DNA from: Selaginella moellendorffii
Lineage: Eukaryota; Plantae; Lycopodiophyta
DNA: 5,427 bases
Reading direction: 5' to 3'
NCBI RefSeq assembly: GCF_000143415.4
Contig: NW_003314728.1
Location: 1 to 5,427, forward strand
The first letter of the stretch is position 1; each line of letters begins with the position of its first letter. Below, piece by piece: positions 1 through 5,427 of the stretch. The position numbers and the translations under genes are program-made. Under the pieces are notes generated by a model. That model was given only the letters and a program-made list of their open reading frames with translations, did no database searches and had not been told where the DNA came from.

Positions 1-1794
1 TTTGGTGTGTGAGTGTGTTGATGCACACTGCTGGTGCATGAATCGCACTGTGGACGGATGGAAGACATCTCCCGGGCCCTCTGAAGAAACTAAAAAACTA
101 TACCAAGTTAAACAACCATTTGAAGGGGAAAGTCCTAAGAACTAAAAGCAAAGAGAAACCATACCACATTTCCAACACAAACAACATCGATGTCCTTGTT
201 GCGCCCAAAAGTTACTACACCACCGAGAGCGAGCTTTTCACCATGTCCGCAAACCTGGAGAAATCGCAGGATCAAAACGCTTTCATCGTCTCATTCATTC
301 GCTGTCAGTGTTTTTACCTCGTTCTTCCATTTTTTAAACTTGCTTGCTTCCACTAGCTACGTTGATCCAAGGCACACCATCATCCACGTTCAAGCGCTCT
401 CCTTCCTGCCGTGTAAGATGCAAATTCATGGATTAAACAAAGTTTCTACGAGCCAAGTCACAACACATGCTTGGAGAGATCGGATCGGCTCTTCAAAGCT
501 TTTTGACAGCCGCTTCGAGAAAACACTCGCAAGGATAAGGGAAGCTCATTCGACACACAAAAAGTATGCAAGCCAAGCAAGACAGAAGAAAAAAACACTT
601 TGCTCACGAGCGTTCCTGGCTCTACCAACACGAGTGACAAATCCATGGTCACAACTTAAGGCTCTTCGCTCTTGGCACTTTTGCTGGCTGGAGCAGCTTG
701 TTTACGATTAAACAAGGCTAGTGCTGGTTGGAAGGTCACGCTCATTGACAAAGGCATGTTGAGCGAGAAAATGATGAACATGGGGTGCCAATGGGACCAG
801 AAACTTCCATGCTTTGCTGTAGGATTAGGCAACGATTACATACCTCACCTTGTTTTAGCCTTGTTCTTCGCTTGTGTTCTGTTCGTTTCTCTCGAGTTCC
901 CATGCCTGCCTGTTAAAAGAAGAAAAACAAAGGAAGTTTAGATGGTGATCTTAGTGGAACTCATAAGCGGGTGGCAAGTGGAGCTCAAAAACAATGATGG
1001 ATGTAATCACGAGGAGGAGAATAAAAAGACTATAACGAGACAGAAACGCTGCTCTGCATGGACCCAGAAAAGCTTAGTTTTGTCCTGGAGCATCCAGGAA
1101 GACTGTAAAAACTACGCTGGCTGCGAGAACTAAACAAACGCGAGAGCTTACGAGCCCACGTTCTCGACACAAAAACTAACCTCGAAACGCTGGTGGTTGG
1201 GAGGCACCGCAAGCTCCCCGCCTCTACAAAAGCAAAAAAGCCTAGCGTTAGTGCAAGGTAGTCGAGCAAGCATGCACGGGCCAGCAGCATAAGAAGAGAA
1301 AAAAACGCGAAAAGTGAAAGAGAAAAGAAGAGTGCTCACCATGGATGGCTGCTGCTGTGCTGGTGTCTATCCATTCAAGGAGATGTTGCCATCGTTACGG
1401 TTTTAAAATGCGGGTCAAAACGGGGTCTCACCTTGTTTTTGTTCCTGGAGGGTGAGGACGACTTGTGTGAAGGAGCAACAACGTAAAAAATGAAGAGGAT
1501 CACCTTTGTGCGGGATATACCAGCGCCTATCGAATACCGTGACCCGACGTTTCAGGAATTGGCAGCAGCCGAAAGTGTCCGACTTAACAGCGGAGAAAGC
1601 TCAGCCTGCCAGAAGGGAAATCTTTGTTAGTTACTGATAAGAAAGAAAGACAACAACGCAACCTGAGATGGAAGTGAAAGTAAAACAAGTCGTTTCTCTA
1701 AAACAGTAGCGTCAGTCAGTCGAGCATTCAATCGTTCCCATGACTGTTTCCCATGACTATGGAGCTTTGTCTTGGAGCTGTAAATCCGACTCAC
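1..1794 (-). other. Putative multi-exon gene body or decayed gene of unknown product, downstream of the PPR fragment
   Basis: Series of minus-strand GT...AG pairs with T-rich interiors. Candidate introns: 255-317 (63 nt), 1121-1180 (60), 1224-1339 (116), 1367-1431 (65), 1445-1503 (59). Further donors at 164, 607, 848 and 1794. Exon 165-254 reads open as VCGHGEKLALGGVVTFGRNKDIDVVCVGNV. I could not assemble a continuous frame or recognise a family. Confidence 0.35.
1734..1758. repeat. Short tandem duplication (TTCCCATGACT x2, period 13)
   Basis: TTCCCATGACT at 1735-1745 and 1748-1758; overlaps the stop codon of the unspliced PPR ORF (1757-1759). Confidence 0.75.
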
Positions 1795-2152
1795 CTCGCG
1801 CATAGATGTTGGACATGAGAGAGTACGCGGAGCCTGTTCCATCGTCGAGCTTGAGAACCGACTGGAAAGCCATCCTGCCAAGCTCCACATCTCTCCACTT
1901 GAGGCATGAACTTAACAGCGCCGTCCACAGCACCGTGTCCGCCTTGCAAGGCATCGCCTCCACGGTCTTGAGCGCTTCGTCTAGCCGATTTGCCCGGCAC
2001 AGAAGATCCACCAAGCAAGTGTAGTGCTGGACGTTTGGAGCCACTCCATACTCGCTGCTCATGGCCTCGAAGAACTCGCGTCCCTTGTCAACCAGCCCGG
2101 CGTGGCTGCATGCCGTGAGCAGCGAGACAAAGGTGAACGCACCGTGAAGCAC
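1757..2152 (-). pseudogene. PLS-class pentatricopeptide repeat (PPR) protein C-terminal fragment (L2-S2-E1-partial E2), 5'-truncated, no E+/DYW
   Basis: Canonical motifs: TFVSLLTACSHAGLVDKGREFFEAMSSEYGVAPN (L2), VQHYTCLVDLLCRANRLDEA...MPCKAD (S2), VLWTALLSSC...VELGRMAF (E1), AYSLMSNIYAR (E2 start). Homology spans ~1795-2140. There is no ATG, an in-frame TAA lies a few codons upstream of 2152, and no upstream P/L/S repeats are visible. Confidence 0.85.
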
Positions 2153-2166
2153 CGAGACGATGAACG
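2113..2166. repeat. Imperfect tandem duplication at the 5' breakpoint of the PPR fragment
   Basis: CCGTGA-GCAGCGAGACAAAGGTGAACG (2113-2139) versus CCGTGAAGCACCGAGAC---GATGAACG (2142-2166). Confidence 0.7.
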
Positions 2167-2431
2167 TACATTGTTAGCGAGATCACTGCAGGGTTCATAG
2201 CAAAAGCGAATAGTGAATACCAATCTTGGAGGCTCTTTGTATTCGAAAATGAAGAGCCAAACTCATCATGGAGACTAGCCTCCTCTCGACTTTACTTCCA
2301 CCCTGAAAAGAAAACACGATAGATCATTCATTATAAAGCATAGACAATAGTACCTGGATCGTGGCTTGTAGAGAACTATCAGAGCTGGGGAATGGCACCG
2401 CATTGTGCGCATTTCTCGCGAGACCTCGAGG

Positions 2432-2450
2432 AACCCTAAATTAAACCCTA
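2432..2450 (+). promoter_or_regulatory. Telo-box pair (AACCCTAAA, AAACCCTA)
   Basis: Plant telomere-like motifs at 2432-2440 and 2443-2450, 40 nt upstream of ATG 2490. Telo-boxes are common near plant transcription starts and in 5' UTRs. Confidence 0.5.
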
Positions 2451-2545
2451 GACCCTCTTCTCAAAGCGGGAAATATTTTCTGGAAAGAAATGGAGATCGC
2501 AGAGAATCACATCGATGTCTCTCAATCGAGGATGAATCGAGAGAC

Positions 2546-2599
2546 AACGACGAGCACGACAAGCGCGACGAGCGCGACGAGCGCGACGAGCGCGACGAG
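2546..2599 (+). repeat. 9-bp tandem repeat (CGCGACGAG)4 plus two degenerate units
   Basis: Perfect units start at 2564, 2573, 2582 and 2591; AACGACGAG and CACGACAAG at 2546-2563. Encodes (RDE)n in the + membrane-protein frame. Confidence 0.95.
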
Positions 2600-2970
2600 G
2601 ACAATCATGAGCAGCGCATCGACCAGGCCACATCGGTCGTGCGATTCATTGCGGCCTCCCTGGGGCTCGTCACGCTCGCCATTGTCTCCGGCCAGCTCGC
2701 TGTCGGCCTGCTGGTGCTCGGCCGCGACCCGATCTCGCTTGTTCTGGAAATCGTCTTCGCCCTGGTCTGGTTCTCCGTGCTTGCGTGCTGGATTGCACAA
2801 GAAATGTGGATGATCAAGCAAGAACCAGAAGAGGATCAACCTGCTGCAGCCGCCTCCCACTCCATCTGGAGCAATGCGTTGCGTCGCTCTTGCACAACCG
2901 AAATTTCGCGTGGATTCTTCGCGGGCGTCCTCCTCTTCCCCTTCTTGTCACTTGGATTCGCCATATCTCC

Positions 2971-3006
2971 CTCGATCGATCGCTCGCTCGCTCGCTCGCT
3001 TGCTCG
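2971..3006. repeat. Tetranucleotide microsatellite (CTCG/ATCG)9
   Basis: ctcg atcg atcg ctcg ctcg ctcg ctcg cttg ctcg. Confidence 0.9.
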
Positions 3007-3072
3007 GGCTCTCACAAACACAATAAACTCCTAAAGTGAACGAAGGCACTTTAAAACGAAATTCTTCCCGCG

Positions 3073-3084
3073 CGCCACGTGGCG
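3073..3084. promoter_or_regulatory. Perfect palindromic G-box (CGCCACGTGGCG)
   Basis: 12-bp palindrome containing GCCACGTGGC, the high-affinity plant bZIP G-box. Function untested. Confidence 0.4.
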
Positions 3085-3121
3085 GGAGCTCGGCAGCGTA
3101 AAAGGGGCGATGGAGATTGGG

Positions 3122-3130
3122 ATTAGGGTT
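3122..3130 (-). promoter_or_regulatory. Telo-box-like motif (AACCCTAAT on the minus strand)
   Basis: ATTAGGGTT on the + strand, ~40 nt from the G-box. Confidence 0.3.
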
Positions 3131-3280
3131 GTGGGATCTCGCGGCGCTGAGGAGAGCTGCTCATCCACCAAGCAATTCCTGGCGCAGAGACTCTAGCGAG
3201 CCGGAGCTTCCACAGCGTTTTCGCGAGAATGCTGCAAGCTTTGACTGTCGCCAACAATCTGGAGAGCAGTTTTGCGTCAC

Positions 3281-4277
3281 CATGGCATCGACGCTGTTCA
3301 CAATGTCTATCAAGCCTTGGATCGGCCGGGTAAGCAAGAGCAAGCCTACTCGATATCTCTTCTCTTACGGATTTTCCTTGTTTATCGAGATGAACTTAGT
3401 GTTTGTTTTCTAGCCAAGCGATTTGCTTTTTTTCTTTTCTGATCCCAAGTCTTTGTTTTCCAGGTTTGCCAGGATCCAAGATGGGGCCGATGCTTCAGGA
3501 GATGCTACAGCGAGAAGCCGCAGCTCGTCAAGGCTATGACGACGATTATCTCGGGGCTTCAAGGTGAGGCCCCTGCCAAAGGAGTTCTATGCGTCGGAGA
3601 ATGACCAAGAGTTCTTACAACTTTTTCTTTTGGTTTTCCTAGCTGCGGCTTGCTCCAAGCACTATGAACTGTGCCAACAGGAATTCGTGATCCCTGATTG
3701 GCAAGGCATTGACAGGATCACAAAACCCGGCACATACTTACACAGTTCTCGTCTCAGTGGAATTGACATGGTGAGAAATGCGTGCTTCTTCTCTCCCAGT
3801 TTACCAACCGGAGCTCTCTTTTTTCTACTCGTTTCTCCAGAAGATAATGACTTCTTGCTTCATCATGGTGCCCCGTACGAGTACACCAAGTTCATCGGCA
3901 CTCTGACGTCTCTGGTGAAGGAAGGTTTCATCTCCATGGACAGGATTGATGACACGGTGCGGAGACTTCGCTTTGTGATGTTCTCGGCAGGTTTGATCGG
4001 CGTAAGCGGCCCTCGAAGCTCAAACTTTCGGATTTTTATACGTAAGCTTTCCTGCTAGGCTCACAGAGATCACTGAGCAAAACAGCCTCGAAGGCCCTCG
4101 TTGCTGGCAGCAATCTCGGGAATCAATGGCTCCTCGTCGGTGAAAGGTGACTTTGTGATCGTCGTGGTCGTACACAAAGACCCACCCACAGGACGGAGCC
4201 AATGCGATCGTCTGGTTCTCTTGAAAAACGGCAAGGATGCCAAGTATCCGCTGCTGCCCGTGGCTGCTAAGACGATC
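3281..4277 (+). pseudogene. Glycoside hydrolase family 3 (beta-glucosidase / beta-D-glucan exohydrolase-like) pseudogene, intron-containing, multiply deleted and scrambled
   Basis: Recognisable plant GH3 blocks: HGIDAVHNVYQA (3281-3316); VCQDPRWGRC..YSEKPQLVKAMTTIISGLQGEAPAKGV (from 3464, TGA at 3602-3604); AACSKHY (3645-3665); FVIPDWQGIDRIT (nucleophile Asp codon 3696-3698); SGIDM followed by a GT donor at 3771; IMVP/YEYTKFIGTLTSLVKEGFISMDRIDDTVRRLRFVMFSAGL (3862-~3995, frameshift ~3874); AHRD (4059); LSKTASKALVAGSNLGNQ (4073-4126); DFVIVVV; LVLLKNGKDAKYPLLP (4212-4259). Confidence 0.92.
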
Positions 4278-4319
4278 TCGCGTTATTTTTTATGACACGT
4301 CCTCAAAAGGTATGGTTGT

Positions 4320-4341
4320 GATCCTTTTGGTCAAAGGGATC
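4320..4341. repeat. Inverted repeat / hairpin near the GC-to-AT boundary
   Basis: GATCCTTTTG-gt-CAAAGGGATC: 10-bp arms with one G.T mismatch. Confidence 0.6.
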
Positions 4342-4354
4342 TACCAAAAAAAGG

Positions 4355-4361
4355 TATAAAT
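4355..4361 (+). promoter_or_regulatory. Candidate TATA box (TATAAAT) for the tandem protease gene
   Basis: TATAAAT starts 40 nt upstream of ATG 4395. Confidence 0.4.
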
Positions 4362-4383
4362 TCCCCCTCCAGGATTTTGTAAA

Positions 4384-4393
4384 TTTAGGGTTT
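4384..4393 (-). promoter_or_regulatory. Telo-box / plant telomeric repeat unit (TTTAGGGTTT; AAACCCTAAA on the minus strand)
   Basis: Exact 10-mer ending 1 nt before ATG 4395. Confidence 0.45.
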
Positions 4394-4394
4394 G

Positions 4395-5237
4395 ATGGCA
4401 GAAGCTTTTGGAAGGTTATATGGGGATCAAGGGTTGGAGAAGAAAATCAATGTTCTTTGGGATTCTGGTAGTGAGTGTGATTTTATTTCAGAAAGACTAG
4501 TCAACGAATTTAATATTACTGTGGATATTAATTCACGGGTTAAAGATTTCAAGTTCATGGTGGAAGATTGTGAATTGAAAACAACTCTGACTGTCCTACC
4601 AGTGATTCTTGATCACGACATAATTTTAGGTTCACCTTGGATGCATCAACATTGCTTAAAATTGGATTGCAGTGGCAATATAAATAATCTAACTTTTGAG
4701 GTAAATGGTATTATATATTGCCTCAGGGGTAATTACAATTTATTCAAGTCTAGAAAATACAAAAGAATAAATCAGCATATATGTCCTCCTTTTTACGACG
4801 TGGAGTATAAGGGGAGAATCAATGATCATCAAATCAGAATTGAATTAGATAATGGTTGTGATATATCAGCTATATCACTTGATCTTCTTAAGAAACTTGG
4901 AATTAAAGCAGTTCAGAATCAGAAGTATTTTGGGAAAAGGTTAACTGCAAAAGTTCAACTAAAATATGGTTATGGAGCTGAGAATTTATTTTATAACTTG
5001 GGAGGTTTTTCAGAAAGTAGAACTTTTCTTGGTATAGTAGATTATTCAGAGAGCATATATCTTGGGATGGACTGGCTTAAGAAACACTCAGCAGTAATTG
5101 ATTATAGAAATCATACTGTTACTTTTAGAAGTGAATTGGGCTGGTGGTATAGATTTCAATATCCACATGGTATATATGAAGTGAGTAAAGATAAATTTAC
5201 AGAGGAGATGAGTAGTTTATGTTGGTGCTTAGTTTAA
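4395..5237 (+). CDS. Tandem two-domain retropepsin-like (Ty3/gypsy-type) aspartic protease, 280 aa, intronless
   Basis: Open frame from ATG 4395 (ATGGCA context) to TAA 5237 in ~30% GC DNA. Domain 1: INVLW-DSG-SECDFISERLV (DSG 4461-4469)...DHDIILGSPWMHQHCLKLD...LTF. Domain 2: GRINDHQIRIEL-DNG-CDISAISLDLLKKLGI (DNG 4848-4856)...IYLGMDWLKKHSAVIDYRNHTVTF. Both match the retropepsin pattern of hydrophobic-D[ST]G-A/S...FIS followed by ILGxxWL...ID...VTF. Confidence 0.88.
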   Translation: MAEAFGRLYGDQGLEKKINVLWDSGSECDFISERLVNEFNITVDINSRVKDFKFMVEDCELKTTLTVLPVILDHDIILGSPWMHQHCLKLDCSGNINNLTFEVNGIIYCLRGNYNLFKSRKYKRINQHICPPFYDVEYKGRINDHQIRIELDNGCDISAISLDLLKKLGIKAVQNQKYFGKRLTAKVQLKYGYGAENLFYNLGGFSESRTFLGIVDYSESIYLGMDWLKKHSAVIDYRNHTVTFRSELGWWYRFQYPHGIYEVSKDKFTEEMSSLCWCLV

Positions 5238-5282
5238 TTAAGCACTTATTGTAGCAATTTAATTCACAAAATTATTCACTAA

Positions 5283-5288
5283 AATAAA
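5283..5288 (+). terminator. Candidate polyadenylation signal AATAAA
   Basis: AATAAA 46 nt downstream of the protease stop codon, in an AT-rich 3' region where such a motif can arise by chance. Confidence 0.35.
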
Positions 5289-5381
5289 TCTATATTATGA
5301 GTGCACCACCTCACACTAGAATTCTTATTTGCATAGATAGAAATAATTGTGTTTTGTGGTGAGAGAAGGGAACTTTCAAGC

Positions 5382-5400
5382 GGGGGAGGAAAGAGGGAAG
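5382..5400 (+). other. 19-nt polypurine tract
   Basis: GGGGGAGGAAAGAGGGAAG followed by TTGCA. Confidence 0.4.
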
Positions 5401-5427
5401 TTGCACTTGCCCTGGGAAGTGAAGGCA

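Follow-up and report, generated by a model that had tools for sequence, protein, structure and literature searches.

Can two retropepsin domains be carried by one natural protein chain outside a retroelement and, if they can, does such a chain amount to a gene or to the remains of an element in decay? Retropepsins are homodimers to which each chain contributes one catalytic aspartate, and pepsins are bilobal single chains; the bilobal aspartic proteases are held to stem from a single, retropepsin-like domain whose duplicates became fused and diverged (PMC11402058). The question is raised by an open reading frame (ORF) of the lycophyte Selaginella moellendorffii, which lies in a stretch of 5,427 nucleotides (assembly GCF_000143415.4, contig NW_003314728.1, positions 1 to 5,427 of the forward strand; this whole stretch is referred to below as the window). 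The ORF encodes a stand-alone two-domain retropepsin of retroelement descent, which belongs to a small and old Selaginella family and carries the mark of past coding constraint. Nothing relevant on natural tandem retropepsins or on duplicated retrotransposon proteases was found in the literature.

Two retropepsin-like domains in a single chain

The ORF runs on the plus strand from an ATG at 4395 to a TAA at 5235–5237 and consists of 280 codons in a single open frame. Its GC content is 0.33 (0.27 at third codon positions, GC3). At this composition, one codon in ~12 is expected to be a stop, and the probability of 280 sense codons is ~1e-11; in the remaining five frames of the AT-rich block that holds the ORF, the longest open run is 61 codons. 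The ATG stands exactly at the start of the first domain and the stop codon comes soon after the second. The codons of the two catalytic aspartates, at 4461–4463 (D23, in a DSG motif) and at 4848–4850 (D152, in a DNG motif), are 387 nt, or 129 residues, apart. No gag, reverse transcriptase (RT), RNase H or integrase domain is detected by Pfam in any other ORF of the window. An original prediction, made from the nucleotide sequence, had described just such an arrangement, namely a single intact and stand-alone ORF that begins and ends with an ATG and a stop of its own, two retropepsin-like domains and this very spacing of the aspartate codons, and the profile searches, alignments and fold predictions described here bear it out. 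The 280 open codons that it placed in DNA of about 30% GC are also found, at the GC content of 0.33 given above.

The two halves of the protein were scanned separately (half 1, residues 1–132; half 2, residues 133–280). Half 1 matches RVP_2 with 23.0 bits (Pfam curated cut-off 20.3) and half 2 matches Asp_protease_2 with 25.4 bits (curated cut-off 24.3), in both cases by a small margin, and these are the two separate matches that had been anticipated. When the entire ORF is used, RVP_2 reaches 38.4 bits, in two stretches. Because the Pfam margins are thin, half 1 was examined further with hhalign: it aligns to a profile of eight single-domain retropepsins over 85 columns, with a probability of 97.4% and an E-value of 1.6e-11.

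The alignments show that the catalytic Asp, the next Gly, one Ile and the Gly of the I-L-G motif coincide in both halves. Half 1 has D-S-G-S as catalytic motif (DSG at 4461–4469), followed by I-I-L-G-S-P-W, of the I-L-G-x-x-W type (Gly at 4629–4631). The corresponding motifs of half 2 are D-N-G-C (DNG at 4848–4856), in which the Asp and the Gly are kept and Asn takes the place of the Ser/Thr of the "fireman's grip", and I-Y-L-G-M-D-W-L (Y-L-G-M-D-W-L, Gly at 5064–5066). At the same position of the catalytic motif, two of eight outside homologues have DLG and one has DCG. The Gly of the hydrophobic-hydrophobic-Gly motif is invariant across the alignments, and this motif is present in both halves. 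Half 1 is ~17–20 residues short between the first helix and the I-L-G motif, that is on the flap side, and half 2 is full length in this region. The original prediction of two complete domains needs correction in two respects, the shortening of half 1 and, in half 2, DNG in place of the canonical D-[ST]-G.

In a full-length AlphaFold2 model, for which the alignment rows covered half 2 only, half 2 has a predicted local distance difference test score (pLDDT) of 80–93 and half 1 stays below 40, so that the relative placement of the halves in this model is meaningless. When half 1 is modelled alone, with an alignment forced onto canonical retropepsins, its mean pLDDT is 83.5. Both modelled halves match the retroviral-protease-like domains of DDI1 in Foldseek searches (E 2e-6 to 3e-6), and the comparison with viral models gives generic matches to the retropepsin fold only, without lineage assignment. 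According to these models, each half, taken separately, adopts the retropepsin fold.

The best profile matches of both halves are to the proteases of Ty3/gypsy long terminal repeat (LTR) retrotransposons (RVP_2, PF08284; gag-asp_proteas, PF13975; Asp_protease_2, PF13650). The ORF has ~30% identity to single-domain retropepsins and shares with Ty3/gypsy-type proteases the D-x-G and I-L-G-x-D-W-L motifs. The latter enzymes are homodimeric and occur once per polyprotein, beside gag and RT, whereas the ORF encodes two domains, one of which is flap-shortened and the other of which has DNG, and stands alone between a start and a stop codon of its own; no gag, RT, integrase or LTRs are in view.

The closest solved structures to both modelled halves are those of the RVP domain of DDI1/DDI2 (TM to target 0.6–0.79), although the sequence matches are weak. 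DDI1 is a conserved eukaryotic host gene whose product forms a homodimer and has a single RVP domain between a ubiquitin-like (UBL) and a helical domain (HDD). In contrast, the ORF product is only 13–21% identical to it, has neither UBL nor HDD according to Pfam, and has no orthologue in the proteomes searched. The top sequence match of half 2 among solved structures is ASPRV1/SASPase (E 0.036, residues 138–246). ASPRV1 ("Retroviral-like aspartic protease 1") is, in mammals, a domesticated stand-alone retropepsin outside any retroelement (PMC11402058). It has one domain, with a D-S-G-A motif, works as a homodimer and has documented expression and orthologues, while the Selaginella ORF encodes two domains and has given no orthologue in the protein searches. 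As for the pepsin-like (A1) proteases, no Asp or TAXi profile of Pfam matches the whole ORF at E up to 10, and A1 structures give only weak fold matches, limited to one lobe, in Foldseek searches.

In the preferred reading, the chain of 280 residues is a fusion of two diverged Ty3/gypsy-type retropepsin domains. No DNA repeat was found between the halves, and BLASTP between them gives an E-value of 0.07 only, in agreement with the strong divergence that had been noticed from the letters. The halves score 6 bits against each other, compared to 33–39 bits against unrelated single-domain retropepsins. They are closer to outside retropepsins than to each other, and an internal duplication is therefore not supported; the same applies to the proposal that one protease had been independently duplicated and fused with itself. 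The fusion of two protease domains which had already diverged would fit the sequences as well or better, and so would a very old duplication followed by strongly unequal divergence.

Halves that resemble each other no more than they resemble foreign retropepsins are also what would be expected if two different elements had been joined, as in a view in which the locus is an inert relic: a retroelement fragment, or a chimera of two protease fragments produced by nested insertion or recombination, which is still open because of its youth and by chance, and in which the tandem unit never had a function of its own. The non-canonical motifs, the repeat-like composition and the broken state of the only close relative, both described below, agree with this view. 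The position of the ATG, exactly where domain 1 starts, and of the stop, shortly past domain 2, tells against it, as does the comparison with the relative, and an inert relic is quite unlikely.

A broken second copy and the trace of selection

Relatives of the ORF product were searched exhaustively with HMMER among 1.84 billion representative proteins (E < 0.001). This search gives ten matches in all, nine of which are generic single-domain retropepsins, ~30% identical to half 2; one of these nine sits within a gag-protease-RT polyprotein (P0008). The best match is the C-terminal tail of SELMODRAFT_424830 (EFJ13091.1), a hypothetical protein of 418 residues from S. moellendorffii, which is 76% identical to half 1 over 46 residues. 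It is encoded at positions 10001–11837 of L001, a locus of the same species on scaffold GL377635.1. Its last 46 residues are read from a broken copy of the retropepsin ORF, to the start of which the gene model joins upstream exons by splicing. SELMODRAFT_424830 lacks any Pfam domain and has the look of a chimeric gene model. Nothing was retrieved by word-indexed, length-limited protein searches in which the query was either the whole ORF or half 1. The exact ORF product is absent from the records of genome annotations and of run assemblies, and metagenome contigs gave 0 matches to two exact patterns, one taken from the conserved leader and one from a conserved coding stretch.

The second copy is 74% identical to the ORF at the DNA level (compared parts: window 4395–5204 and L001 11607–12377). 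The copies are homologous over the ORF, to its end, and over the 22 nt that precede the ATG, and their flanks are unrelated on both sides. The L001 copy is a solitary block (GC 0.31, observed/expected CpG ratio, CpG o/e, 0.18) in gene-rich DNA, and there is no retroelement gene among the called genes within 10 kb of it. It is broken by 5 stops and 6 frameshifting indels, and has 3 in-frame indels, relative to the frame of the window. Nevertheless, it keeps DSG, DNG and the short half 1. Since both copies have the DSG...DNG arrangement and the short domain 1 in common, the tandem architecture predates their split. The ORF is therefore a member of a small and old family known from at least two solitary loci, of which the window copy is open and the other is a pseudogene. 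Where an LTR retrotransposon would have many dispersed copies, the protein searches reveal this one further locus only.

The same scaffold carries the counterpart of another segment of the window (Table 1), at L001 13374–15457. The second ORF copy is a few hundred bases from this shared segment, on its opposite side relative to the layout of the window; both ORF copies are 0.4–2.3 kb from the copies of the segment, on opposite sides. The arrangement points to segmental duplications in the past of this region, and one more ORF copy may lie just upstream of the window. The region L001:12226–12950 is an inverted duplicate of the second copy's own 3' part, with arms at ~12226–12492 and ~12690–12950 which are 91–100% complementary and separated by a loop of ~200 nt. 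The sign of the GC skew flips in the middle of this palindrome, which looks like a recent local rearrangement.

The substitution rates were obtained from a single pairwise comparison, that of the window ORF with the L001 pseudogene, over 244 codons, block by block and with summed counts. The synonymous rate dS is 0.58 and the nonsynonymous rate dN is 0.20, hence a dN/dS of 0.34. The differences at codon positions 1, 2 and 3 amount to 0.20, 0.17 and 0.29, respectively (heterogeneity p=0.003). Since one of the partners is pseudogenised, the ratio in the constrained part of the history was lower still than 0.34. Taken by half, the dN/dS is 0.19 (half 1) and 0.67 (half 2). The dS is 0.88 in domain 1 and 0.36 in domain 2, and dN varies in the opposite direction (0.17 and 0.24, respectively). 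This contrast in dS could reflect a mosaic history, by gene conversion or recombination, or noise in AT-rich codons.

When neutral substitution is simulated on the ORF, the share of runs without a stop is 28% after 2% change, and falls to 5% after 5% change and to 0.3% after 10%. Together with the selection signal, this rapid gain of stops indicates that the tandem ORF was for a long time a constrained coding unit. The window copy has undergone little or no neutral decay so far and its release from constraint, if any, would be only recent. The purifying selection that had been proposed from the openness of the frame therefore stands as past constraint on the family (dN/dS 0.34, p=0.003), as distinct from present constraint on the window copy or constraint for the benefit of the host.

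The second copy tells against an inert relic. The tandem architecture, the 5' end, the short domain 1 and the DNG motif are all common to a copy that split off at dS ~0.58, and the divergence after the split is biased to synonymous changes and third positions, which shows that the tandem unit was under coding constraint after its formation.

The same data have to be weighed with respect to domestication, that is the possibility that the tandem retropepsin is a host gene, kept for a plant function as a single-chain, pepsin-like protease, the second locus being a dead paralogue. The ORF is intact compared to 11 disruptions in the paralogue, and the dN/dS of 0.34 (0.19 in domain 1) is that of a constrained sequence. 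The homology is limited to the ORF and to a well-kept 22-nt leader with a telo-box-like motif, TATA-like and AATAAA motifs are plausibly placed (Table 1), each copy stands alone in gene-rich DNA without neighbouring retroelement genes, and neither has element termini. All of this agrees with a host gene. The composition does not. The AT-rich block has a GC content of 0.32, a CpG o/e of 0.21 and a strong skew of G over C, compared to ~0.50 and ~0.93–0.94 for GC and CpG o/e in the rest of the window; GC3 is 0.27 in the ORF and 0.70 in a neighbouring PPR gene fragment. Both copies have retained a GC3 of ~0.27 and a CpG o/e of ~0.2 through a dS of 0.58.

So strong a loss of CpG usually marks repeats that are methylated and silenced, and the repeat-like composition appears unlike that of a long-resident, expressed host gene of this genome. 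Moreover, the proteomes searched hold no orthologue or annotated homologue: where a domesticated retropepsin would have conserved orthologues, the protein searches return the broken S. moellendorffii copy and generic, ~30% identical retropepsins. The DNG motif of domain 2 and the shortened domain 1 also count against domestication. Because of the composition of a silenced repeat, and with no orthologue or transcript on record, the ORF is not read as an established host gene. Domestication, which the original prediction had put forward, is to be regarded as a minority possibility: the product is unrecorded, the sole visible relative is a broken copy, and an active or host-serving protease is at most a candidate reading.

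The block and its neighbours

The features of the window are listed in Table 1. The 5' bound of the AT-rich block is the start of the homology between the copies, and its 3' bound is derived from the GC profile only. The TATAAAT sequence lies outside the part that is common to both ORF copies.

Table 1. Features of the window, with their positions (first to last nucleotide), strand and the basis of their assignment
Feature	Position	Strand	Basis and remarks
Paralogous duplicate of GL377635.1 DNA, ending inside the PPR gene	23–2136	+	94.65% identity
C-terminal fragment of a PPR/E-motif host gene, cut by the end of the duplicated segment	1757–2152	-	Pfam
TATAAAT, TATA-box-like, 34 nt 5' of the ATG	4355–4361	+	Read by eye; putative
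AT-rich, CpG-poor block with the ORF	4373–5370	+	Copy homology (5' bound) and GC profile (3' bound)
22-nt leader, 21/22 positions alike in the second copy	4373–4394	+	Alignment of the copies
Telomere-repeat/telo-box-like TTTAGGGTTT, immediately 5' of the ATG	4384–4393	+	Read by eye; putative role
Intact ORF for a tandem retropepsin-like protein, 280 codons and TAA	4395–5237	+	ORF reading, Pfam, composition
Retropepsin-like domain 1, residues 2–113	4398–4733	+	Pfam, alignment, hhalign, model, Foldseek
Basic linker, ~21 residues, residues 114–134	4734–4796	+	Modelled without structure
Retropepsin-like domain 2, residues 135–255, full length	4797–5159	+	Pfam, alignment, model, Foldseek
C-terminal tail, residues 256–280	5160–5234	+	No family match; low model confidence
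AT-rich 3' tail, GC 0.29	5238–5370	+	Dissimilar to the tail of the second copy
AATAAA in the 3' tail	5283–5288	+	Read by eye; putative polyadenylation role

The window ends shortly after the ORF, and the latter might be part of something larger, either a longer AT-rich segment of viral or retroelement DNA downstream or a spliced gene with further exons. Just 190 nt are visible past the stop; at the second locus, the S. moellendorffii gene model splices upstream exons to the start of the copy, and the block is longer there, with its inverted partial duplicate. However, the GC content is back up to 0.52 at 5351–5400, so that the AT-rich block apparently ends within the window. The upstream DNA is rich in GC and CpG and has no retroelement domains, both protease domains are complete inside the single ORF, and the gene model of the second locus has no Pfam domain and a chimeric look. 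A larger unit is very unlikely on these grounds.

The neighbouring DNA had been described as broken. It is ordinary, GC-rich plant nuclear DNA without retroelement genes, which includes the PPR/E-motif fragment on the minus strand; PPR repeats followed by an E motif are typical of the nuclear DNA of land plants. No direct repeats or LTRs flank the block within the window, which reaches 190 nt past the stop on the downstream side, and no terminal inverted repeats, poly(A) or target-site duplication are seen at either ORF copy. Scans of the window for tRNA genes and Rfam families gave nothing.

Several other identities were considered and rejected. An LTR element or an LTR-flanked mini-element was rejected, as no repeats were found within the window. 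A retrocopy of the LINE (long interspersed nuclear element) type was rejected as well: such retrocopies vary at the 5' end, whereas here the copies differ at the 3' end and agree at the 5' end, and no A-run is present. An organellar origin was set aside because the neighbours are nuclear-type DNA with a PPR gene. Finally, a glycosyl-hydrolase fragment at 3280–4060 was discarded, since Pfam gives no match.

Other observations concern the DNA upstream of the block. The plus strand at 3282–4060 has exon-like stretches between what look like short introns (GT...AG, pyrimidine-rich); one of these stretches recalls a segment of glycosyl hydrolase family 3, the candidate for which Pfam gives no match. 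An open frame of 209 codons (GTG start as listed) occupies 2405–3034; it contains a 9-nt tandem repeat at 2548–2608, which encodes an acidic D/E/R run followed by hydrophobic stretches, and a (TCGC)n-like microsatellite is found in the same region at ~2977–3003. No family match and no homologue was found for this frame (word-indexed protein search). Further telomere-repeat-like motifs (AAACCCTA/TAGGGTT) occur at 2424–2450 and 3118–3130, near other possible gene starts, and such motifs may be common promoter-proximal elements of this genome.

A putative pseudo-dimer and its meaning

The reading that we prefer, with a confidence that is evenly divided, takes the ORF for a genuine coding unit that stands alone and derives from a retroelement: a gene whose origin is selfish or lies in a retroelement, and which has not yet decayed at this locus. 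Should the protein be made, an intramolecular pseudo-dimer would be its likeliest form. Domain 1, with its DSG motif and shortened flap side, would pack with domain 2, which has DNG and a full flap, in the way the subunits of a retropepsin dimer do, and D23 and D152 would come together in one asymmetric active site, covered by a single flap, that of domain 2, as in pepsin. In a retropepsin dimer, the C-terminus of one subunit lies beside the N-terminus of the other, and the linker of ~21 residues (residues 114–134) should therefore suffice to join the domains. By analogy, the ORF product would work like the A1 proteases, with two lobes in one chain, one Asp in each, an asymmetric site and a single flap. 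Engineered tethered dimers of retroviral proteases likewise have two linked lobes in one chain. The pseudo-dimer, its catalysis and its expression are all inferred.

Several points weigh against this reading of the ORF as a selfish or retroelement-derived unit in its own right. Neither copy has recognisable element termini, so that an origin as a mobile unit is not demonstrated. Homology over the ORF only, unrelated flanks and one intact copy would fit old duplicates of a host gene equally well. The DNG motif and the shortened flap side may reflect a loss of catalysis, and the pseudo-dimer is hypothetical, half 1 being unreliable in the full-length model. The selection signal comes from one pairwise comparison, in which dS is oddly unequal between the halves, and the short reach of the window past the stop counts here too. 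The further step, from a coding unit to a single-chain tandem retropepsin maintained by selection, which would act as an asymmetric, one-flap pseudo-dimer and serve either the plant or a minimal selfish gene as a pepsin-like enzyme, is in our view rather unlikely.

What the locus may teach depends on which of these readings is correct. As a young relic and no more, the ORF would be a curiosity in the decay of retroelements. Expressed and folded into one pseudo-dimer, it would be a rare example of the transition from a single-domain to a bilobal protease and, in a vascular plant of an early-diverging lineage, a new kind of gene derived from a retroelement. Natural intermediates in which both lobes are plainly retropepsin-like would open the fusion step in the origin of bilobal proteases to study, and the ORF has a fitting architecture, a pepsin-like asymmetry, with a full flap in one lobe, and a history of coding constraint. 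If the protein were indeed a single chain maintained by selection, the locus would be an independent and still recognisable replay of the domain fusion to which the bilobal proteases are held to go back.

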